NCBI GenBank assembly: GCA_002104945.1
Contig: MCFH01000022.1
Coordinates: 248,001-312,000 of the forward strand
DNA length: 64,000 bases
Source: Piromyces finnis finn
Lineage: Eukaryota; Fungi; Neocallimastigomycota
Direction: 5' to 3'
Both the position numbers and the translations under genes were made by a program. Below, in pieces: positions 6,498-47,883 of this stretch (positions within the stretch are counted from its first letter, which is position 1; the number at the start of each line of letters is the position of its first letter). A model generated the notes under the pieces. That model had not been told where the DNA came from, searched no databases, and saw only the letters and a program-made list of their open reading frames with translations.

Positions 6498-9297
6498 TTA
6501 ACAATCTCTATTTTTAATTGGTACTGTGGAAATTACGTTATTTTTATTCACATTACTACCATAAGAATGATTTAAATCTTGAGCAGAATTGGCTGTTTCA
6601 TAATGACATTTTATAATCTTATTGAAAAAGTTTTCTGAATTATTACTAATACTACTTTTTGTACTGGTCATTTTACTTTCACTGTTAATAAGACTTAATC
6701 GAGTTATATTTCTCATATTAGTTTCATTTGTCTTTTTTTGTAAGTAAGCTTCTTTTGATTCCAAATCATCAACACCAGTAGTAAATATTGAAATATACTT
6801 CCAGACATAAACAAAGAAGAAATTGGATAAACCAAATAGTAGTGCTGGTCCAACTTTTGTCCAGAAATAAAGTTCTTTACTTTTAAATTCAGTAAAGTAA
6901 AATGCAGCAAAGATTAAAAAGGCAATAACATCAAAAGAAATACAAAAAGTTAAACTAATAATATCGGTTTTTGTAGCAGTAATATTCCATTCGGCAAAAA
7001 TTAAAATAGCAAAGATTAATATTTCAATCCCTTTATCAGCAATATCCACAGTTAATATTAATTTTGTTAAATTATTTGTACAATCACAAGTTTGGAAATT
7101 TTCTAATCCGTCTGATAAGTAGAGAAGATGATTATTGACTGTAAATGGAAAGAGAAGGTATAATACGCAAAGTAACAATTCAAAGAGAATATGATAGCAA
7201 AGATAGTTTGAGAAGTTTCGACTAATATGATTTGAAATTCTATTTGATTCTGGGAAGAGAACAATTAATCGTAAAAGTAGTGGTGAGAATGAAATTGGTA
7301 AACCGAGAGTAAGAGCAATAAAACGTAGATTACATTTAACTTGAGTCATTTCTCCAACACTTATTACAGTGTAACATAAAATAAGGAAAGTTCCATACAA
7401 GAATACAGCCCAATAATTATTATTTAAGAAAACAAATAAAACGTTTATTTTTCTATGGAACATTAAAATGTATGATACAACGATAAAAAATGTAATAATT
7501 AAAAATAATGCTGAGATGAATAATCCTGAAGGTGAGTCTATTCTAACAAAATGATTGAGTGTGAGGTCATCGATATGTTTAAGAGTTTCTTCTGAGGTTA
7601 ATTTATTTTTGTACAAATAATTATCGATAATATTTAAAAACTCGTTGCTAAAATCGTCGTAACTGTCGTAGTAATTTATTGGTTTATTGAAAAATTGAAG
7701 ATTTGAAATTAATTCGCAATCAACTTTTTTGCATACATTATTATTAGTAGTGGTTGCATTTTGAGAATATAATTTTACTAAAGGACTGTACATATTCCTT
7801 GAAGATGCAAGATATTTTTGCATATCTTCAGAAAACAAATAGTCTAAAACAATAGACATTTTATGATGCTTATCCTCATCGACATATTTAGAAATACCAA
7901 TATTGTATCCATAAATACTACTGCCATATGTTCCTGGATTGTTACCGGGTATTGGAATGAAATTAAATATCTTTTTATATTCTTCACTCATTGGGAAATT
8001 AAACATTCTTGCAAAAACAACATTTCCAGTTAATATTTTTTGTATAACTTCCGTTTGCTCTAATTGGAAATATTCCTCTATTTTAATAATAATAGAAATA
8101 GTTTGGTAAAAAAAAAAAAAAAAAAAAAATAGATATATTAGTTAAAATGTTTTTTTGTATAATAAATAAAATTTTTTTTATAGTATATATATTTACTTGA
8201 AGAATAATTATCTAATAAATATTTTAGCATTGTCATTGCTTCTATAGAACTTTTGCTTTGATAATCTGGAATTTCATCACTCTTTTTATTTTCTCTGTAA
8301 GAAAAAATCATTTCTTGAATAGTATTTATAGTAACATAATTTTCTAATTATCAAATAGTAAGCAAAATATATTATTTAAAATAAGAAATATGACTATTAG
8401 AATAAATCATTATTTTATTTTAAAAAAAAAAAAGCAAAAAAAAAACATTTTATTTGTTAATTATGATATATACCTGGTAAACCTCCTATATATCCAATCA
8501 AATCTTTATTGATTTCTTTTTCTTTGCTATATATATATGAAAGTGTCTCGTTAAGTTGTTTCCAAGTTTCCGGTACAGGTAAATTGTATTTTTCTAATAA
8601 CTCTTTATTATAATACATATTACCATAATTGGCTAATAATGGCTAGCATGGGATTTTCATAATTTATATAAAAAATATAATTAATAAAATTTATTTTATT
8701 ACATTGTATTTAGTGATTATTAATTATTATATTTATGTTAAAAGTATTAATAAACCCACATATATGTATATGGGTATATTTTAAATACATACTATACCGA
8801 CTAAGGAGTCATCTCTATATCCAACATATTTTATAACACCTTTATTATATTGTTCAAGTGTATTAAGAGAGATAAGCTTTTTCATATTAATTAAATTTCC
8901 TCCAACACTGTAAGTATGATGAATATTATATAATATAAAATCATATTCTGTAGATTTTTTTGCTAATATATCTTTAATTTCTAAGCCATATTCAGATTCA
9001 TCTTTATCAGAATAAACCATTTTTATATTGTATTTTTTAGATTGTTTATAACGATCTCCTTTAATACTATTACTACCATATTCATTAGTTGATATTTCAT
9101 CATATTTTTCAACTACACTATCCAATAAGGGTTTGTATATTGAAGGGGCAAAAAAAAAAAAGTATCTCCACTTCTACTAGCGGCACTAATTGCTAATACA
9201 TCTTTTAAAAAATTATATATAAAAAAAAATAATATTTTTTTTAATTATTAATTTAAATATTTTAATATTTATTGATAAGGATATCATGTTTCTGTTC

Positions 9298-12121: not shown

Positions 12122-12997
12122 TTAAATCATATTAATAGGACGACGGATGGTTGGTGCTGGGAATTCATTATCAAGTCGTTGTACGTCTTCTTCACTTAAC
12201 TTAATTTTATCACTAAGAACGTCATAATTATCACATAAATGTTTGATTTGTGTAGATTTAGGGATTGTTATATAGTTGGGTTGGGAATGAACAAATGCTA
12301 ACATAATTTGATAGATTGTGCAATTGTATTTTTCGGCAAGTTCTAATATTAATTCATTTTTAAAAATAGAACGATCTCTTACAATTGTTCCTGCTCTTGC
12401 CAAAGGTGAATATGCCATTAATGGGATACCAAATTTAACAAGTTCAGTATCTGCTTCTCGAGAAGCAATATGATATAATACTTGATTAACTACACAATTT
12501 TCACCGTTTGGTATACTTAAAAGTTCTTCCATATCTTCTACATCAAAATTAGATACACCCCAACGTTTTATTTTTTTTTCTTTTACTAATTTTTCCATAC
12601 AATAAACTGTTTCACGAAGAGGAATACTACCACGCCAATGTAATAAATATAAATCTAAATAATCTACCCCTAAACGTTTTAATGAATTTTCACAACTACG
12701 GAAAATATTTCTTTTTCCAGCATTGAATGGATAAACTTTTGACACAATGTAAAGATCTTCTCTTTTTACAATTCCATTACTAATTGCCTTATTTATAGCT
12801 TTACCTACTACTTTTTCTGCACCACCCTCACCATACATTTCAGCAGTATCAAGCAATCTTATTCCTAATTCAATACTTTTATATATAGATTCAACTTCTA
12901 AATCTTTTTCATCTTCCATTTCTCCCATTTCCCAAGTACCAACACCACCTTTTGGTATTAAACTACCATCTTTTAATTGAATTGTTTGTAAACCCAT
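12122..12997 (-). CDS. Aldo/keto reductase, bacterial (YeaE-like) type
   Basis: Intronless 291-aa ORF with AKR motifs GTWEMG, LDTAEMYGEG, IVSKV, LYLLHWRG, GVSNF, NQVLY and AYSPLA. Confidence 0.93.
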   Translation of the reverse strand: MGLQTIQLKDGSLIPKGGVGTWEMGEMEDEKDLEVESIYKSIELGIRLLDTAEMYGEGGAEKVVGKAINKAISNGIVKREDLYIVSKVYPFNAGKRNIFRSCENSLKRLGVDYLDLYLLHWRGSIPLRETVYCMEKLVKEKKIKRWGVSNFDVEDMEELLSIPNGENCVVNQVLYHIASREADTELVKFGIPLMAYSPLARAGTIVRDRSIFKNELILELAEKYNCTIYQIMLAFVHSQPNYITIPKSTQIKHLCDNYDVLSDKIKLSEEDVQRLDNEFPAPTIRRPINMI

Positions 12998-13299
12998 TTT
13001 TAATTATTTATAATTCATATATATAATATATATAATATATATATTTTATTTAATTCTTTTTGAATTCTCTTAATTTTAAATGAAATGTATTTTTTTAACA
13101 ATATTTAATTGTTATTTTAATTTATATTTTTAAATAAAACAAACTAGTACGTTATGAGAAATTATTGGTTGAAATAATAGATATTAATAATAATATAATT
13201 TTAATAGATACATAATTTATTATTATTATAATAATAAAAAATAAAAATAAAAATAAAAATAAAAATTAATAATAATATTTATAAAGAAATAATAATAAA

Positions 13300-14271
13300 A
13301 TGAATGGAAATATAATAAAAAACTCAACTAGATTAATAAACAAATCTCAATATTCAGTATCCACTAATTGTTTAAATAACATTTACAAAAAACTTTTTTA
13401 TTCTACAAATGCTAATAATAAAGGTTTATTGGGATTAGTATTAAATCAGGATGGAAGAGGTGGTTGTCTTATTGATATTGGAGCTCGTGAACCATTAATA
13501 ACTCGAAGTGATTATTTTAAAAGATTTACAAAACGTGTAGGAGCAACTTCTCTTTTTCTCGGTAAAGATATAAATGATATAGGTATAGATAATACTTCTT
13601 TAAATAAAAAAAAAACCAATAAAAAGAAAAAATCAAAAGCTGGTAAGCTTCAAATGATTGATATTCAAAAATTATTAGTTAGTCCACTTTTACCCCACCC
13701 GGATGCCGATCCTGTAGATACTTTTGAATTTGAATTTCAATTAGTTAAAGAAGCTCTTGATAATTGTTCATGGAAACTTAATGATTCATTAGAAATTCGC
13801 CGTTCAGTAATTTCTCAACATGCAGCAAGAATAGTTACTGGAGGTTTTATTATGACAGCACCAAAAAATGGATCAATTAATAATCCATATGATATTCTTA
13901 ATGCCATGTCAGAAGTATCAGATGAAGATAAGGAATTACAGGACCAAGGATTTGGTGAATTGGCTACAATGTTAACTCTTTCTTTAAAAGGTAAAAGATC
14001 AAAAGCTGTTTCTGTTTGTAGAAAAATGTCAAGATTTGCAAATCAATTAGCGAAACATATAACAATTTTTAATCCTCGTTACATTTCTGAGGAAGAATAT
14101 AAAAAAGAAACAAAGAAAACAGAAGTTCCAGAAGAAGATAAAGAAAAAATATTATTAAATCAAAAATTCATGTTTGATAACGAACAAACTGTAGCTGAAG
14201 CAATTGAAACTGTAGAAAGCATTGATGAAGTTAAGGTTACTGTATCTTCATTTGTTCGTTGGACATTATAA
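13300..14271 (+). CDS. Divergent organellar elongation factor Ts-like protein with putative hydrogenosomal presequence
   Basis: Segments match the EF-Ts core and C-terminus: KGLLGLVL...CLIDI, FKRFTKRV, KLNDSLEIRRSV, ANQLAKHITIFNPRYIS, LLNQKFMFDNEQTVAEAI and VSSFVRW. The N-terminal UBA-like domain is absent, and the NCETDFV motif position reads GAREPLI. The first 50 residues contain no acidic residue. Confidence 0.7.
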   Translation: MNGNIIKNSTRLINKSQYSVSTNCLNNIYKKLFYSTNANNKGLLGLVLNQDGRGGCLIDIGAREPLITRSDYFKRFTKRVGATSLFLGKDINDIGIDNTSLNKKKTNKKKKSKAGKLQMIDIQKLLVSPLLPHPDADPVDTFEFEFQLVKEALDNCSWKLNDSLEIRRSVISQHAARIVTGGFIMTAPKNGSINNPYDILNAMSEVSDEDKELQDQGFGELATMLTLSLKGKRSKAVSVCRKMSRFANQLAKHITIFNPRYISEEEYKKETKKTEVPEEDKEKILLNQKFMFDNEQTVAEAIETVESIDEVKVTVSSFVRWTL

Positions 14272-14328
14272 AATAAATATTTAAAAAACTATAATTTAAG
14301 AATAAATTTAATTGTATATTAAATTTAA

Positions 14329-14330
<2 letters not shown>

Positions 14331-14403
<73 letters not shown>
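14331..14403. repeat. (AAT)n microsatellite
   Basis: Pure aat repeat run downstream of the EF-Ts-like stop codon. Confidence 0.9.
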
Positions 14404-14407
<4 letters not shown>

Positions 14408-15074
14408 TAAGAATAATAATAATAATAAAAAGAAATATTTTTTTTTTTAAAAAAGTAATAGACCAATTTATATAATTGGATCAAAGGATGTTATTAAAGA
14501 TTCGACAATCTAGTGAGAGTGAGAGAAAAATAGTCAATATTTTTCAAAGAGTTACTTAATCTATGAAAGAGATGTAGTTGATAGTTAAAGTAAAACAATA
14601 TTATTTATAATAGAATAAATATATAAAACAAATAAAGTTTTTAAATATAATTAGAAAAAAAAACAACGACCTAACCTTTTGATTTTTTTTTTTTTTTTAA
14701 ATGGATCATTTAGTATTTATTCTACATTTTATATTTAATTAATATAAATTAATTGTAATACCACCTGTAGAATAATATATATATAAATTTTTTTTTTTAC
14801 AATGTATGAAATGATATATTATGATTAAATCTTAATTTTAAACAATATACCAAAATAAAAAAACAATATAATTAATATAAATTAATAAATGTATCAATAT
14901 ATTATTTTTTAATTGTCTTTCTTGTATTTTTTAAAACTATAAAAAAAAAATTTTTTTTTTTTCATCATTTTCTCTTCATTTTAACTTTTTATTTATCAAT
15001 TTATATAAAAGAATTTTAAATAAAAATCTTGGAATTTAAAATAATTCAATTTTAAAATTTAAAAGAAAAAAAAA

Positions 15075-16907
15075 ATGGTTAAAGATATTGATATTTCTTT
15101 ATATTTAGTTACTGATTCTTCACTTGTTCCAAAAGGCAAAACTTTAGCTCAAGTTGTTGAAGAAGCTATTGAAGGAGGTGTTACCTTTGTTCAACTTCGC
15201 GAAAAAGATTGCGAAACTCGTGAATTTATTGAAAAGGCTTTTGAAATTAAAAATGTATGTCAAAAGCATAATGTCCCATTCGTTATTAATGACAGAATTG
15301 ATGTTGCTTTAGCTGTTGATGCTGATGGTATTCACCTTGGTCAAAAAGATATGTCTATTGAAATGGCTAAGAAAATTTTAGGTCCAAACAAAATTATTGG
15401 TATTACTGCTGAAACTAATGAACAAGCTATTGAAGCTGCTAAGGCTGGTGCTGATTATATTGGTAGTTTAGCTATCTACCCAACTCCAACTAAGGATATG
15501 GGTGAAAATTTCAAGGGTTTAGGAAAGGAAGGTCTTGTTGACTTATTAGATACTCTTTATGAATATGATATGAAGGTTGTTGCTATTGGTGGTATTAATG
15601 CTACTAATTTGGATGAAATTGTTGATTATTGTAATAAGAACATCAAAAAGGGTAAGAATTTAGATGGTGTTGCTATTGTTTCAGCAATTATTGCTGCTCC
15701 AGATTCAAAGAAGGCCTCTGCTGAACTTGCTTCTATGATGGCTAAAATTGAAAAGGTTAATACTGAAACTCTTAATGCTGCTACTCCAGACTACGAAATT
15801 GTTAAGAAGGTTGGTGAAGCTTTATACCGTATTAAGGAAAATTCACCATTAATTCATACTTTAACTAACTTTGTTGTCATGAACGATACTGCTAATGGTA
15901 CAATTGAAATTGGTGGTAGTCCATGTATGGCACATGCTGTTGGTGAAGTTGAAGAATTTGCTACTATCGCTGGTTGTGTTGTTATAAATGTTGGATCTTT
16001 ATCACCAGAATTTAATGATTCTTTCTATTTAGCAGGAAGAGCTGCTGAAAGAGCCGGTACTCCAGTTGTATTTGATCCAGTTGCTGCTGGTGCTACTCAT
16101 TATCGTTTAGCTACTTGTAAAAGTCTTCTTTCTTCATTTAAGGTTACTGTTTTAAAGGGAAATGCTGGTGAAATATCGGCTATTGCTGGTTTTGGTGGTG
16201 CTGTTTCTAAGGGTGTTGATAGTACTGGTACTGTTGAAAAACCATATGAACTTGTTTCTAAATTAGCTACTAAACTTAATACTTGTGTATGTATGACTGG
16301 TGCTGTTGATTATATTAGTGATGGTAAAAAAACTATTTCTCTTCATAATGGTGATAAAATGCTTGAAAATATTACTGGTTCAGGATGTACTGTTGGTAAC
16401 TTAGTTGGTAAGTTTAAAATAAAATATAAAAATGAAATGTTTATCCTTAGAAAAATAAAATTTTTAATTCAAAGAAATCAATTATCCAAAAATAACAATA
16501 ATAATTTTAAAAAAAAAAAGAAAAGCAATTACAATTTTTTGAAATTTAATTCAAAATTTTAATTAATTTTAAATTGCATACAACTAATTCAGAATGACAA
16601 GTTGGAATAAATTATTATTATTATTATTTTGGAGACTTTTTAAATAACCTAAACAAAAAATATTTTTTAACTTTTTTTTTTTTTTTTTTTTAAAAAAATA
16701 GGATGTTTCGCTGCAATAGAAAAAGATCCTGTAATTGCTGCTGCTGGTGGTGTATTATCTATGAGTATTGCTGCTGAATTAGCAATGAAGCAACCAATCG
16801 TTCGTGGACCAAGAACTTTCTTTGCTGCTCTACATGATGAACTTTATCTTTTAACAGCTGAAAAGTTCCAGAAATATGCAAAGATTCATGTTGAATCATG
16901 GGAATAA
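15075..16907 (+). CDS. THI6: Bifunctional thiamine-phosphate synthase / hydroxyethylthiazole kinase (ThiE-ThiM fusion), 2 exons
   Basis: ThiE motifs QLREK and INDRIDVALAVDADGIHLGQKD; ThiM motifs TNFVVMNDTAN, DPVAAGAT, LKGNAGEI and ITGSGC. The intron 16408-16701 (GTAAGT...TAG) joins to exon 2, GCFAAIEKD...RGPRTFFAALHDELY...ESWE, with the stop at 16905-16907. Confidence 0.95.
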
Positions 16908-19839: not shown

Positions 19840-21495
19840 CTAAGATCTGTAATCAGCATTAATGTGAACATATTCAACACTGAAATCACAAGTGTACATT
19901 CTAGCTTCTTCCTTACCAAGACCTAAATCAATATCAAATAACATTTCTTCTTCCTTTAAAATGGAAGAAGCAACTTCTTCATTAAGATCATGTGGTTCAC
20001 CATTCTTGAAAATAGCTAACTTCTTTTTACCGTCAGCAGAACAGATGTTAAGAGAAACCTTGTTAGCTTCAATATCAACACCACTGTAACCAACAGCACA
20101 AATAATTCTACCCCAGTTGGCATCTTCACCAAAGACAGCAGTTTTGATTAAGGAAGAATTAGCAATAGCTTCACAAACAGTCTTAGCTTCTTCAAATGTA
20201 CGAGCATTCTATATTTTAATGATTGTATTACATTAAATATTTTAAAATTATATTCCATAATAATAAAATATGTATCTATTTTATTTTAAAAAAAAAAAAA
20301 ATAAATAAAAACATATAAATTAGCTTTTTACTTACTCTAACTTGAACTGTAATGAATTTAGTGGCACCTTCACCATCACGAACAATTAACTTGGAAAGTT
20401 CAGTGGCAAAATCGGTTAAGGCTTGTTGAAATTGAAGGTATTCTTCTGAATTTGGATCATCAATAATGATATCAGCATATTTACCAGTCATAGCAGCACC
20501 ATTAGCTAAAACACAGAATGAATCATTAGTAGACATATCACCATCAACACTAATAGCATTGAAAGAACGTTGAGCTGCGAAATTTAAAGCCTTTTGTAAA
20601 CATTCTTGAGAAACACGAGCATCAGTATAGATGGTGGAAAGCATAGTAGCCATGTTTGGATGAATCATACCAGCACCCTTACATAAACCGGCAATACGGT
20701 ATTCACAACCATTACGAAGACGGTAAGTGTTAGAAAGAAGCTTTGGAATAGTATCAGTGGTCATGATAGAAGTAGCAGCTTCCATCCATGAATCATGAGA
20801 AGTACCAACCTTTTTAAATAAGGCAGAAATACCACTCTTAATCTTATCCATATCTAATGCTTTACCAATAACACCAGTGGACATAACTAAGGTTTCCATA
20901 GATGGGTTAGTAGTACCGGAACACTTGGTAACAGTCTTACTAACTTCACGAGCATCCTTTAAACCATCTAAACCAGTACAAGCATTGGCACAACCAGAGT
21001 TAATTAAAATACCTTTTATATATAACAGATAAAAATTATTAGTTATTAAGCTATTTTTTCAAAAATTTTAATTTCCATCATAAAAATAAAATATTAAGAA
21101 AACTAAAAAAAAAAAACTTTTTAAAATTTATTCATAAAAATATATAGTTGTAGTTAATAAAAATATTTACCTAAGAATTTTTTGTCTGGTTGTTGGCTAA
21201 GAAGTTCACGATCTAAAACAACTGGAGCAGCCTTAAAAGCATTAGTAGTGAAAATACCAGCACCAGTACATGGATATTCAGATTGAATTAAAGCAAGATC
21301 TTTAATATTATTTTTTTTTAAACCACAGTGAACACCACCAGCTTTAAAACCTAAAGGATAAGTACCGGAAGTTGGAATATAACGCTTCTTTGATTCAGAA
21401 GATATAAAATTAACATTGTTTAATAAATTTAAAGCAAGTTTTCCATTTTGGAATAACTTGTTCTTTAAAGAAGAGGAATTTAAAAATAAAGACAT
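19840..21495 (-). CDS. ARG7: Ornithine acetyltransferase / glutamate N-acetyltransferase (ArgJ family), 3 exons, organellar presequence
   Basis: Motifs GFKAGGVHCGLK, NSGCANACTG, KGAGMIHPNMATML, DGDMSTND, DGEGATK, KTAVFGEDANWGRI and INADYRS. Exons 21495-21171, 21012-20336 and 20208-19840 are joined by GT-AG introns. Confidence 0.96.
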
Positions 21496-27395: not shown

Positions 27396-29681
27396 ATGGC
27401 TAGAGATAGGTCTTATAGCTATACATCATTAATGTCAGAAAGAACTTATAAAGGTGATGTTGATGATGTTTCTTTTGAAGAAAATAATACACTAATAAAT
27501 GAAAATAATGAATTAAAAACAAATACAGAAAATAAAAATATTTTAAAAGTAGATAATAATGAAAAGATACCAAATGATTCTGTCGGAGTAGAATATGAGA
27601 ATCAAAAAAAGTTAATAGAAGAAGTTGAAAAAGCCAGGTTAGACAAAAAGAAAATTAAAATTCGAGATTTAATAAAGGAACGTAAAGATACAATAGCAAA
27701 AACAGAAAAGATATTAAGTATTTTAAATACATGTATTATTCATAGAAAAACTATAGAAAATCAAATAAAAACGATTGTTAAAGATGTACCTGAAATAAGT
27801 ATTTCAGACCTTAATATAAATGATGAACCTATTAAAATTGATATTGAAAAGATTAATGGTAAATCAAATGGTCCATATGATAATACACAAGAAGAATTAA
27901 CCAATACCAAAAACGCTATAAAGATTGCAATAGAAGAAAAGGATAAAGCTGTATTAGAAAATGAAAAATTGAAAAGAAATATATATGAAAAGGAAGATGA
28001 AATTGAATATCTTAAAGACCAAAATATTAAACAATTATTACAATTAAAAATATCAGAAGAAAAGCAAGAACAAGTCCATTCTGAAATTGAAAAAATTAAT
28101 AAAGAAAAAAAATTGTTATTAAGTAGTATAGAAGAAAAAAATAATGAAATTTCTTCTCTTAAAAGAAAAAATGAAAGTCAACAAATAATAATAGAGAAAA
28201 CAAAACAAGAATTGGAAAAATCTAGAGAAGAAATTGAAGAAATTTTAAAAGAGAAAAAATCAGCTATTAGAGAAAAAGAAAGAATAATGGATGAAATAAG
28301 CGCAAAAGAATGTGAAATAGAATTACTAAAAGAAAAAAATAAAAAGCAAGCATTATTTATAAAGGAATCTGAAGAAGAATTAGAGTATACCCAAGAAGAA
28401 GTTAAAAAAACTAAAATAGAAAAGATAATGAATATGAAGGATATAGAAGAAAAGAAAAGCGAAATTAACATACTTAAAGAAAAAAATAAAAAGCAACAAT
28501 TATTATTAGAAAAAAGCAAAACTGATTTAGAAAAGGTTTTTACCGAAGTTGAAAATACATTTTTATTTATCAACAAAAAGAATGAGGAAATAGAAATCCT
28601 AAAAAATGAAAAAGAAAGATCAATTGAAATAGTCAATAATAAGGTAAAAGAAATTGAAAGTATTGTAAATAATATTAAAAATATAAAAATAATTGAAAAG
28701 GAAGAAGCTAATAAAACGGTAAAGAAGATGGAAGAAGAAATAGCATCTCTTAAAAGAGAAAATGAAAGAAAGCAATCTATTATTGATGATACTAAAAAGG
28801 AATTTGAAAATACAATGAATGAATTGAAAACCGCTCAAAACGATAAAATAAATATAAACCGGAAAATAGAAGAAAAAGATAATGAAATTGTATTGCTCAG
28901 CAATTCAAAAAAGGCTCAACAAATATTAATTACTAAATTACAACATAATTTGGAAAAGGTTCAAGAAGAACTCACAGAGTCCGAAAAAAACAACGATGAA
29001 TTGAAAGATGAAAATCAAAAAATAATGAACAAGGTTACGGAAATGCAAAACATAATATCAACCTTGAACAAAGAAAAAGGATCAAAGCAAAAAGAATTAG
29101 AAGAATTAAAAGCGAAGCATTCTTCTTGTAATTCCAAGGAATTCTTAAAGGTCGAACAAAAAAAAGCTGATAAATTAAATGAACAATTATCGTTTATTAA
29201 AAACAATATTAATGAAGCAAAGTTTGAATTAAAAAAATACATGAAAGATTTAGAAGTAATTTATCCTGAACTTAAGATTAACCCAAAACAATCCAATATG
29301 TATAACAATATTTATAATTTATTTGTATATTCCATTGACAGTTTATCCTATATAAAGGAATCTAACGATTGCAGTAAGCTAAATAAACATTTTAATAAAT
29401 GTATAAATATAATGGAAACCGTACTTAATAAAGTTGATCATCCTTGTTCCTTAATACGTTTTGATCTTTGTGATTACGAAGGCAAAAATGGTAAAATCTA
29501 TGGAAATATTAATGAAACAAAATCTGTAGTTAATTCAAGTTGTGGATGCAAGTATCATACTACTTGTTTAAAATCAGCCTTAGCTGTTCGTAATTATAAT
29601 GATTTAAATCAAATAAATAAACCAATAAAGTTTAAATGTCCAAATTGTCATGAAGATACTACTGCAACGTTATTATCATAA
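27396..29681 (+). CDS. Long coiled-coil protein with C-terminal atypical RING-like Cys/His cluster
   Basis: Intronless 761-aa ORF with E/K-rich heptad repeats and a C-terminal C...C...CGCKYHTTC...CPNC pattern. Confidence 0.7.
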   Translation: MARDRSYSYTSLMSERTYKGDVDDVSFEENNTLINENNELKTNTENKNILKVDNNEKIPNDSVGVEYENQKKLIEEVEKARLDKKKIKIRDLIKERKDTIAKTEKILSILNTCIIHRKTIENQIKTIVKDVPEISISDLNINDEPIKIDIEKINGKSNGPYDNTQEELTNTKNAIKIAIEEKDKAVLENEKLKRNIYEKEDEIEYLKDQNIKQLLQLKISEEKQEQVHSEIEKINKEKKLLLSSIEEKNNEISSLKRKNESQQIIIEKTKQELEKSREEIEEILKEKKSAIREKERIMDEISAKECEIELLKEKNKKQALFIKESEEELEYTQEEVKKTKIEKIMNMKDIEEKKSEINILKEKNKKQQLLLEKSKTDLEKVFTEVENTFLFINKKNEEIEILKNEKERSIEIVNNKVKEIESIVNNIKNIKIIEKEEANKTVKKMEEEIASLKRENERKQSIIDDTKKEFENTMNELKTAQNDKININRKIEEKDNEIVLLSNSKKAQQILITKLQHNLEKVQEELTESEKNNDELKDENQKIMNKVTEMQNIISTLNKEKGSKQKELEELKAKHSSCNSKEFLKVEQKKADKLNEQLSFIKNNINEAKFELKKYMKDLEVIYPELKINPKQSNMYNNIYNLFVYSIDSLSYIKESNDCSKLNKHFNKCINIMETVLNKVDHPCSLIRFDLCDYEGKNGKIYGNINETKSVVNSSCGCKYHTTCLKSALAVRNYNDLNQINKPIKFKCPNCHEDTTATLLS

Positions 29682-45363: not shown

Positions 45364-47883
45364 ATGCTAACAAGTGAAAGTAAAACAATAAATGAGCAAA
45401 GCTCAGTTAAAGATGACCAATACAATAAAAACAATAACTATGCTAAATCAATAAATGAAAAATCAGCATTTGCTGAATCAATATTTGCAAACTCAATATT
45501 TTCGGAAGACAATAACGATATAAATGAAACTATAAATGCTATGTTTTTAAATGAAAAATATATAAAAGAAATACCTGAAGAAGAAGAAATAATAGAAGAA
45601 CAAGGAGAAAATGAAATTCAAAATAATCAAATTATTAGTGAAAGTATTTTAAGAGAGAAATCTATAAAATCAATTCACGAAGAATCTATCATAGAAAAGT
45701 CAGAAATAAAAAAATCCTCTTCTCAAAGCTCTAAAATTATCGAAACACAACACTCATTTATTGACCAAGCTGCAATAGAAAGGCAACAATCATTTTTTGA
45801 AGGCGAAATTGATAAAAGACCATCTTTTATAAATAATTCAATAATTGAAGAAGAAGATCCAAAATTTATAAATGAAGATATAATTGATGAAAATGATAAA
45901 CATTATATGGAAAGATCTATTATTATTGAGGAACCTATTAGACAAAGTACAATTATTGATCCAACAATTACTTCATTTGAAAAATCAAAAATAAATAAAA
46001 GTAAGATAGAAAATACAAGTATGAATAAAAATGAAAATTCTAAAATATTAGAAACTAATGATACTCAACTTGAAAGAAATAATAGTGAGAGTAATAAATC
46101 TGTAATAAGTGAATCAAATGTATCAACTGTTAGTAAGAGTAATAAAACATTATCTTCTGTTGATTATAGTTTAACATCAGATGCTGATCGTTCTACCACC
46201 AGTGTTAAAAGAAAGATATTAAGTATGCTTTTTATACCCAATACTCGTTCAAATCACCTTTTTAGTAGTGGTAGTAGTATTCGTTCAAGTAGATTTTTTA
46301 TACCATCATCAAAACCAGTTGAAAAAAAGAAGAAGACGGTATTCACTGATTTACCAGATAATGCTATACAATTAATTTTCAAATATATTGGTGAAACTTA
46401 TTCAATTGAATTTAAGCATACCTGTCAAAAGACTTATCGTGTTGGTAACCATCCAGATACCATTGCGAAATGGCTTTATTACTACTATGATCCAAAAGTT
46501 TTAACAATTCCAGAATCAGATCAACAAATTGCATTTAAAAACCGTCTTATTGTTACCAATGATGTTATTGCTTCAATAGTAAATAATATTGATGAAAATG
46601 TAGTAGAAGATTTTGATGATAATTTAAAAAATTCATTAACAGCTTATTCCTTAAAAAAGGATGATTTACATTTATTACAATCACTATTTAAGCCATTCTG
46701 TTTCAATGTAGAAGTTGGTTTAGTTAGTATTGCATGTCAAAACCAAAATCGTACATCTCAAGAATTTATTACTTATTTATTTGAGAAGGATTTTATACTA
46801 CCAAAATCAACTTTTTACGAAGCATGTTTACGCTACAACACTTACGTTATTAATTGTTATCTTAATTATAACGATATTTCTCACAAGGAAATCGATGATT
46901 ATTTCAAGAGTATTGAAAAGAGACCATTCCATCCAATGATTGCTGCAGCTCGTTCTGGTGATATGTCTTTGATTAAAAACTTGATTGAAGACATTGGCTG
47001 TAGTGTTTCTTTATTTGGTTATTATGCCTTTATTAAAGCTATATCCCATAATAAACTTAATGTTGCCAAATATATTTTTAATTTGTATCCACAACTCGAC
47101 TTAAATGATAATGAAATGATGAATATTGTTTCTAAGGCTGCAGAAAGAGGACGTTTAGAAACTATTCGCTTAATCAAATATGTTTATGATAAACGCTATG
47201 GTAAATCTAAAACAGTCAATGTATTTAGAAAACCTGGTATTTTAGCAAATGCCATCACTGCATCTGCATTAGCGGGTCAATTGGAATGTTGTGTATGGCT
47301 AATGGAAAGAGAAAAGAAGTATATTAATGCAGAGTATGTTAATAGAATTCTAGAATGTTTTAACAACCACTTAAAGGGTAAATCACATTTACCTTTACTT
47401 CATCGTGCTCGGTTCCTTCAATATCTTAGTCGTTTTCCAGTCGATTTTAAGGGTAAAACGGGTTATGATCTTTTAAAAATTTCAATTGGTAATGATGATG
47501 TTGATTCCATCACTGTTCTAATCGACAATGGTGTTAATTTTAGAGCCGATAATGAACAGCCCTTACAATTGGCCTGTGGATTAGGAAAATTAAAGGCAAT
47601 AAAAATATTATTAGATAAAGGTGCCCAGCCAAATAAATATGTTATTAGAACCTTGAAAAAAGGAGTAATCATCAATGGTAATATTATTCGTTTAGATCGT
47701 GAAAAGAAGAATGAAGTTACTAAATTATTAAGCAACGTCCAGGTAAATATTAATTTTCTTTAACCGCTAGATTTATTGTCATAAAAATTCCATTGAATTT
47801 ATTTTATTTATTCTTTTTATTCTATAATTAATATTTGTTATTTTTAGACTTCAAAAAGATTTTCCCTTTCATTCCAGAAATAA
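45364..47883 (+). CDS. Ankyrin-repeat protein with acidic/Ser-rich N-terminus and F-box-like motif, 2 exons
   Basis: F-box-like segment FTDLPDNAIQLIFKYIG; ankyrin-like segments AAARSGDMSLIKNLI, KAAERGRLETIRLI and PLQLACGLGKLKAIKILLDKGA. A phase-0 intron 47743-47847 leads to a short last exon with the stop at 47881-47883. Confidence 0.8.

Follow-up and report, generated by a model that had tools for sequence, protein, structure and literature searches.

The window analysed here is the whole stretch of 64,000 nucleotides taken from the gut fungus Piromyces finnis (Neocallimastigomycota; assembly GCA_002104945.1, contig MCFH01000022.1, positions 248,001 to 312,000 of the forward strand). Its gene at 13300-14271 (+) encodes a reduced and altered relative of the translation elongation factor EF-Ts. 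The textbook job of EF-Ts is the recycling of EF-Tu in bacterial and organellar translation. We think it fairly probable that the gut-fungal protein is an EF-Ts core imported into the hydrogenosome, with its grip on EF-Tu dismantled and its surface remodelled for some other partner, and that it is not an exchange factor for organellar translation. A first-pass annotation of the gene had described EF-Ts core and C-terminal segments in order behind a leader resembling an organellar presequence, with the UBA-like N-terminal domain gone and the TDFV exchange motif changed to EPLI. It had also suggested that the protein might have a new hydrogenosomal role, such as chaperone, scaffold or partner of another GTPase, and had proposed a comparison with EF-Ts structures, a phylogeny with chytrid mitochondrial EF-Ts and an analysis of selection.

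The identity of the protein was established by sequence and by modelled structure. The window protein matches the Pfam family EF_TS (PF00889) with 31.7 bits against a cut-off of 27 (E 1.4e-7), and the family is matched in all 11 clusters of gut-fungal orthologues. Its score with the NCBIfam tsf equivalog model is 19.3 bits, far below the threshold of 104, so it is not an equivalog. When the protein was compared with PDB sequences using phmmer, three collinear segments aligned with Thermus thermophilus EF-Ts (1tfe/1aip), and the order of core and C-terminal segments seen in the first-pass annotation is thereby upheld. A fold was then modelled with AlphaFold from an alignment of 80 sequences consisting of gut-fungal, canonical fungal and alphaproteobacterial EF-Ts. 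This model has a predicted local distance difference test score (pLDDT) of 86.3 and a predicted template modelling score of 0.81. In a Foldseek search, the top 20 PDB matches were all EF-Ts and the best was bovine mitochondrial EF-Ts (1xb2_B, E 2.3e-12). VIA-align superposed residues 38-323 of the model on residues 114-328 of the same chain with a Z of 18.7 (212 residues, 3.5 Å). The corresponding Z was 16.0 for residues 55-260 of the E. coli protein (1efu_B) and 10 for Thermus EF-Ts, and the first unrelated fold followed at 4.0. The nearest clusters in the ESM Atlas carry the name 'Elongation factor Ts, mitochondrial'. The structural comparison proposed earlier therefore returned a match. As judged from sequence and model together, residues 38-323 are the two-subdomain core of EF-Ts. 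The equivalent of subdomain N (residues 38-175; 13411-13824, +), which includes a PLLPHP segment found in fungal mitochondrial EF-Ts but not in bacteria, is delimited by the VIA alignments. That of subdomain C (residues 176-323; 13825-14268, +) is delimited by sequence and VIA alignments and has a ratio of nonsynonymous to synonymous substitution (dN/dS) of 0.07-0.21.

Elements of canonical EF-Ts that are missing or replaced in this core were located by alignment. The residues of EF-Ts that contact EF-Tu are those listed in PMC3747624 and PMC9529903, and their numbers (T79, G126, H147 and so on) refer to E. coli EF-Ts from NC_000913.3. In canonical EF-Ts, the N-terminal UBA-like domain contacts domain I of EF-Tu. 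None of the 11 gut-fungal proteins matched EF-Ts_N (PF25025) or UBA, even at E ≤ 1. PF25025 was matched at E ≤ 0.01 by all eight full-length canonical fungal relatives tested, one of which reached the curated cut-off. The structural alignments also begin only after the N-terminal domain, at residue 55 of the E. coli protein and residue 114 of the bovine one, so the reported loss of the UBA-like domain is confirmed. The N-domain contacts R12, M19, M20, K23 and K51 have no counterpart in the gut-fungal proteins. Within the core, the exchange motif is replaced. Asp80 and Phe81 of TDFV form the wedge that displaces Mg2+ and GDP (PMC3747624). The window protein has E-P-L-I at this place (13489-13500, +), just as the first-pass annotation had it. 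T79, D80 and F81 are identical in 65 of 65 alignable canonical EF-Ts, and these positions are E, P and one of L, I or V in every gut-fungal cluster.

Further contacts are replaced in both subdomains. K-L-N-D-S (13774-13788, +) aligns with canonical K-(I/L)-G-E-N, which holds the I125/G126 contact of E. coli. G126, a contact of EF-Tu domain I, is kept in 66 of 69 canonical sequences and is N or D in 11 of 11 gut-fungal ones. Likewise, G-G-F-I-M (13840-13854, +) takes the place of G-x-Y-x-H, and H147, a contact of EF-Tu domain III found in all 67 canonical sequences, is M in all 11. Two other contacts of domain III have changed throughout the gut fungi: A174 (A or G in 69/69 canonical sequences) is V or I, and K166 is N. 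Across the 35 core columns in which canonical EF-Ts reach at least 75% conservation, the gut fungi are identical in 16, similar in 11 and different in 8, and the eight differing columns are concentrated in the TDFV loop, the G-E-N turn and the Y-x-H strand. Structural hallmarks are retained (G42, F73, R167/R168, P259, L285, Q288, F318 and R320). At its other end, the protein terminates three residues past the conserved F-V-R-W and has no C-terminal GEGIEK module. Given the positions that have changed, canonical GDP exchange on EF-Tu by the gut-fungal protein seems very unlikely.

Two segments have been added. A lysine-rich loop (residues 94-118; 13579-13653, +) is specific to gut fungi and absent from fungal and bacterial EF-Ts. 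It is modelled as disordered, with a pLDDT of 57-66. Three of its lysines (K108, K111 and K116) are invariant, and its dN/dS is relaxed, at 0.15-0.84. The second addition is an acidic insertion of 31 residues (186-216; 13855-13947, +) inside subdomain C, which is absent from all canonical EF-Ts. It is modelled as two helices (196-204 and 208-215) with a pLDDT of about 95.

The origin of the gene was traced by profile search and phylogeny. A hidden Markov model profile of the gut-fungal proteins was run exhaustively over 1.84 billion representatives and found 33 proteins in all. All matches outside the query's own gut-fungal cluster that were scanned or traced to a source were EF-Ts. Those with names all came from early-diverging fungi, that is, chytrids, Mucoromycota, Glomeromycota and Zoopagomycota (Hyaloraphidium, Phlyctochytrium, Nowakowskiella, Polychytrium, Batrachochytrium, Powellomyces, Rhizophlyctis, Basidiobolus, Mucor, Rhizophagus and other Glomeromycota, Linnemannia and Jimgerdemannia). 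A maximum-likelihood tree of 55 rows was calculated under LG+C20+F+G4. In this tree, the gut-fungal clade (100/100) lies within the clade of fungal mitochondrial EF-Ts (100/99), apart from the alphaproteobacteria. The gut-fungal stem is 2.98 substitutions per site long, compared with a median of 0.38 for the tips, and branches within the clade are short. A long-branch artefact is likely in the placement of the clade among its fungal sisters.

Gut fungi carry many bacterial genes (PMC10978972) and this gene has no introns, and so a fragment of bacterial EF-Ts acquired by horizontal transfer has to be weighed. The tree contradicts it, and the named nearest matches are early-diverging fungi. The protein has the fungal PLLPHP segment and F-V-R-W end and lacks the bacterial coiled-coil, and because these traits are shared with fungi they argue for vertical descent from fungal mitochondrial EF-Ts. 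We reject bacterial transfer, to which we assign next to no probability. On tree and traits alike, the gene is a vertical descendant of fungal mitochondrial EF-Ts and not of a bacterial gene.

A search was also made for other EF-Ts genes in gut fungi. A profile built from 18 canonical EF-Ts of fungi gave 120 top matches. They are spread over many orders of chytrids and other fungi, and none is a named gut fungus. From this, the degenerate gene seems to be the sole EF-Ts homologue in gut fungi. The canonical EF-Ts nearest to the gut-fungal profile (E 9e-15), P0012, comes from a JGI metagenome, has a UBA-like domain and TDFV and sits on a long branch. It was considered as a second, working gut-fungal copy and ruled out, as its contig (L013/L014) has 33-38% GC against 20-28% in gut-fungal contigs and belongs to a different metagenome.

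Orthologues of the window gene were found in 10 further clusters at 90% identity. They have 312-339 residues, 54-84% identity and intact reading frames. Those with names are Piromyces sp. E2 OUM62694.1, Anaeromyces robustus ORX71727.1, Neocallimastix californiae ORY73766.1 and N. lanati KAG4097877.1. They are labelled hypothetical or uncharacterised in NCBI and UniProt and 'translation elongation factor EF-Ts' in JGI/IMG. Pairwise dN/dS is 0.13-0.37 (Nei-Gojobori, 28 pairs) and falls to 0.07-0.25 in the folded core. In a codon bootstrap of six pairs with 1000 replicates, the 95% intervals spanned 0.09-0.45 and no replicate reached 1. Most pairs have a dS of 0.6-1.9, which is near saturation, and therefore the dN/dS ratios may, if anything, be overestimates. 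The most divergent orthologue (P0011), found in Logan assemblies of two 2023-numbered runs, branches as sister to all the others and has the same losses. It may come from the deep tortoise-associated gut-fungal lineages, which have been dated to 104-112 million years ago (PMC10978972).

These data bear on a simple explanation of the degeneration, namely that the gene is a functionless relic decaying slowly after organellar translation was lost. The loss of contact features and the very long stem branch are what such decay might leave behind. The selection data contradict it: frames are intact in all 11 clusters, no bootstrap replicate came to 1, and the core is still 70-85% identical at synonymous distances close to saturation. 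Residues specific to gut fungi are invariant, and gene order is kept across genera that split tens of millions of years ago. Slow decay was rejected and is very improbable. The comparison of orthologues instead indicates a gene that is clearly functional and under purifying selection across genera, in line with what the first-pass annotation had expected.

The location of the protein was approached through its N-terminus. Residues 1-36 (13300-13407, +) form a presequence-like leader, recognised by composition, that is basic, hydroxylated, free of acidic residues and rich in asparagine. It contains five K/R, no D/E and eight S/T, and it ends in KKLFYST; the first acidic residue of the protein is number 51. 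In the model, the leader has low pLDDT, with a helix at 22-33. The leaders of all 11 orthologues have 33-43 residues with three to five K/R, no D/E and three to nine S/T, and the description of an organellar presequence given in the first-pass annotation therefore extends to the whole group. Two flanking genes of cytosolic type have 6 and 9 acidic residues within their first 36. The sequence of the leader drifts among orthologues with its composition kept, and dN/dS over the first 30 codons is relaxed. The end of the leader is different in this respect. K-L-F-Y-S-T (13390-13407, +) is a candidate processing site in which K31, F33, Y34, S35 and T36 are invariant in 11 of 11, so that the group consensus is K-x-F-Y-S-T with L or K at x. 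The motif is plausibly a trace of the ancestral processing site that now adjoins the core directly, because in canonical fungal mitochondrial EF-Ts the leader closes with R-x-Y-(S/A/T) immediately ahead of the N-domain.

The window holds another gene with a leader of this kind. ArgJ (glutamate N-acetyltransferase; 20276-21495, -) has several exons, and the open reading frame (ORF) of its first exon (21154-21495) starts with an acid-poor leader rich in N, S and K that is much like that of the EF-Ts-like gene. ArgJ is in the list of predicted hydrogenosomal proteins that accompanies PMC10978972, and its leader is a probable same-genome example of a hydrogenosomal presequence.

For the EF-Ts-like protein, a hydrogenosomal location is suggested by leader composition and by a row named 'tsf, TSFM' among the DeepLoc-predicted hydrogenosomal peptides of gut fungi in the supplement of PMC10978972 (2024, Dataset S3). 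Another possible explanation is that the protein is functional outside the hydrogenosome, in the cytosol or nucleus. The leader would then be just an extension rich in N, K and S, such as AT-rich genomes typically encode, and the lysine loop would be a nuclear signal or a nucleic-acid-binding patch. The K-K-K-K-S-K run of the loop and its three invariant lysines fit this explanation, as does the comparison of K-(L/K)-F-Y-S-T with the processing-peptidase motif (R at -2/-3 before an aromatic residue and S/A/T): K stands where R is usual, and the register is ambiguous. It accounts poorly for leaders that carry no acidic residue in any of the 11 clusters, against 6-9 in the neighbours, and that drift yet keep both their composition and an invariant end. 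The ancestor of the gut-fungal protein was, moreover, a matrix protein whose leader had a like end, and the DeepLoc screen, as given in the supplement, placed TSFM with the hydrogenosomal peptides. We regard a location elsewhere as unlikely.

Whether a hydrogenosomal EF-Ts could still serve translation depends on the state of the organelle. Neocallimastix hydrogenosomes are reported to have no genome (van der Giezen 1997, as cited in PMC8318970), and the same is reported for those of the mammalian-derived gut-fungal genera (PMC10978972); it is for these genera only that the absence is established. The authors of PMC10978972 left 155 mitochondrial families out of BUSCO, following an earlier suggestion cited there. 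They also raised the possibility of an organelle genome in tortoise-derived gut fungi, hinted at by predicted 'translation factors'. The rows of their Dataset S3 include 'tsf, TSFM', 'Efg1', 'PTH1' and an Era-like GTPase. TSFM, mitochondrial EF-G1, PTH1 and the Era-like GTPase, as they stand in these lists of predicted hydrogenosomal proteins, may form a set of translation relics.

The protein might be a still working exchange factor that serves a divergent, co-evolved mitochondrial-type EF-Tu, either in residual organellar translation or in a moonlighting role of that EF-Tu. As S. cerevisiae shows, EF-Tu/EF-Ts dependence is flexible in evolution. The positions facing EF-Tu are invariant within gut fungi, as for a maintained interface, and the predicted hydrogenosomal EF-G1, PTH1 and Era-like GTPase and the possible genome of tortoise-derived fungi, as far as the supplement of PMC10978972 documents them, also fit. 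Such a factor would have to work without its entire N-terminal domain and with T79/D80/F81, G126 and H147 all replaced, residues that are invariant or nearly so in working bacterial and fungal EF-Ts. The deep-branching orthologue P0011 is equally degenerate, and hydrogenosomes of mammalian-derived gut fungi are reported to be without a genome. In the text of the PMC10978972 supplements, there is no entry for 'elongation factor Tu', TUFM or mitoribosomal proteins except one MRPL48, and gut-fungal genomes were not searched for EF-Tu. Taken together, a retained exchange activity of this kind has a low probability.

The favoured explanation, an imported EF-Ts core with a new partner, can be put as a sequence of events. 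A burst of change on the gut-fungal stem would have reduced mitochondrial EF-Ts to a leader and a two-subdomain core. The UBA-like domain was lost, the residues that grip EF-Tu and expel GDP were replaced, and the lysine-rich loop and acidic two-helix insert were gained. Purifying selection has since acted in all sampled gut-fungal genera. Today, the leader would direct the precursor into the hydrogenosome matrix, where cleavage would occur close to K-L-F-Y-S-T and leave a mature protein of about 285 residues. This protein would act as a protein-binding module with a remodelled, family-specific surface. More specifically, the core may have been recruited as the dedicated partner of a non-translational hydrogenosomal protein, perhaps one of the GTPases left in the organelle, such as the hydrogenase maturase HydF, the Era-like GTPase or a relic of mitochondrial EF-G, as its exchange factor, regulator or assembly chaperone. 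We hold this combination of partner and role to be a long shot; if true, it would be the first time that an exchange factor of translation had been redirected to a new client following the loss of translation from its organelle. In a rarer variant, the EF-Ts-like gene and the EF-G1, Pth1 and Era-like relics would mark a cryptic remnant of organellar gene expression.

Several observations weigh against an imported core with a new partner. The hydrogenosomal location is a prediction, and the lysine-rich loop resembles a nuclear localisation signal. From the 11 gut-fungal sequences alone, AlphaFold gave no usable model (pLDDT 41.5). Because the 80-sequence alignment itself contained EF-Ts, the fold does not count as evidence separate from sequence homology. 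The invariance of the replaced contacts would be expected with a new partner and just as much with the old one if it had co-evolved, and a divergent EF-Tu may be that partner. The substitute for F81 is still hydrophobic (L, I or V). The missing GEGIEK module is not diagnostic, because the module is also gone from some working fungal EF-Ts, for example that of Hyaloraphidium. With a hydrophobic residue in place of F81 and a C-terminal module that can be dispensed with, some residual exchange may be possible. The signs of transcription are four sequencing runs that contain 60-78% of the sampled words of 13100-14500 and are only guessed to be RNA, together with short contigs about the size of the ORF from libraries of unstated type. 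The interpretation offered in the first-pass annotation has thus held in part. The retained EF-Ts-derived fold, the losses of the UBA domain and exchange motif, purifying selection and the presequence-like leader stand, whereas the hydrogenosomal location, the absence of EF-Tu and the new role are predictions.

Comparison with known systems shows how far the protein has moved. Fungal mitochondrial EF-Ts (Hyaloraphidium KAI9028486.1, Phlyctochytrium KAI9098169.1, Mucor GAN08426.1 and Rhizophagus PKC09860.1) is its phylogenetic parent group and has the same core, PLLPHP and F-V-R-W segments and leader, without a coiled-coil. The gut-fungal protein shares only 19-29% identity with this group, however, and differs from it in lacking EF-Ts_N/UBA, TDFV, G126 and H147 and in having two insertions. 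Bovine mitochondrial EF-Ts (1XB2 chain B, with EF-Tu) is the best structural match, but the window protein has no counterpart of its residues before 114 or of the TDFV wedge. With bacterial EF-Ts (E. coli 1EFU; T. thermophilus 1AIP/1TFE), it shares the core fold and collinear segments. It lacks the N-domain (1-54), the coiled-coil (180-228) and the C-terminal module (264-282) of the bacterial protein, and the contacts are replaced. Q-beta replicase (3MMP, 4Q7J and 4R71, entries that were among the structural matches) provides a precedent for the EF-Ts fold as a scaffold. In contrast to the remodelled gut-fungal protein, the replicase uses unmodified host EF-Ts together with EF-Tu. The mitochondrial-type arginyl-tRNA synthetase (PMC8318970) is another part of mitochondrial-type translation that has persisted without the organelle genome, in Neocallimastix among others. 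That enzyme took over the cytosolic job and keeps its catalysis, whereas the canonical function of the EF-Ts-like protein appears to be dismantled. A search of main-text literature found no account of EF-Ts or its degeneration in organisms with hydrogenosomes or mitosomes. What is already on record appears to be the automated JGI/IMG name and the one supplementary TSFM row; the degeneration is not described in the papers searched.

The gene structure and neighbourhood are simple. The gene is a single uninterrupted ORF of 323 codons plus stop in one exon, and its start is the first ATG after a stop codon. It is defined by the ORF list, by a length and start common to the orthologues and by shared synteny. 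G+C across the window is 14-38%. The divergent neighbour is an aldo/keto reductase gene (12122-12997, -), which is also the neighbour in N. californiae and in metagenomic gut-fungal contigs. The spacer between the two genes is about 300 bp, AT-rich and too small for an upstream exon. A gene for a bifunctional thiamine-synthesis protein begins about 800 bp downstream, and the order of aldo/keto reductase, EF-Ts-like gene and, mostly, thiamine gene is kept in N. californiae and the metagenomic contigs. The thiamine gene (15075-16562, +) combines TMP-TENI and hydroxyethylthiazole kinase domains. The ORF here has 495 amino acids, whereas the product in N. californiae has 447; its tail, rich in K and N, probably results from reading on into an intron or untranslated region (UTR). 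Directly 3' of the EF-Ts-like ORF, a long (TAA)n run at about 14331-14405 probably sits in the 3' UTR of the gene or in the spacer.

Other ORFs were seen in the window. The ORF at 6498-8006 (-) has a sub-threshold match to class C G protein-coupled receptors (7tm_3), and its syntenic counterpart in N. californiae has bacterial solute-binding domains together with 7tm_3. A 761-amino-acid ORF at 27396-29681 (+) has a weak SLX1_C match at its end and nothing else. At 45364-47763 (+) lies an ORF of 799 amino acids with ankyrin repeats; on a related contig (L006), an ankyrin gene also comes after the EF-Ts-like gene.

The finding bears on how translation factors in these fungi are interpreted. Predicted hydrogenosomal translation factors, with the TSFM row among them, have been read as pointing to an organelle genome in tortoise-derived gut fungi (PMC10978972). 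The same gene is present, just as degenerate, in Piromyces, Anaeromyces and Neocallimastix, whose hydrogenosomes are reported to lack a genome, and its presence alone is therefore not evidence of organellar translation. The gene appears to have persisted for tens of millions of years since organellar translation ended. Purifying selection has clearly maintained it, even though the elements that did the textbook job of EF-Ts are gone. It gives a natural experiment in what else the EF-Ts fold can do and a testable candidate for a hydrogenosomal function in fungi of biotechnological interest, and with it one can ask how a translation factor is employed once there is no translation left to serve.

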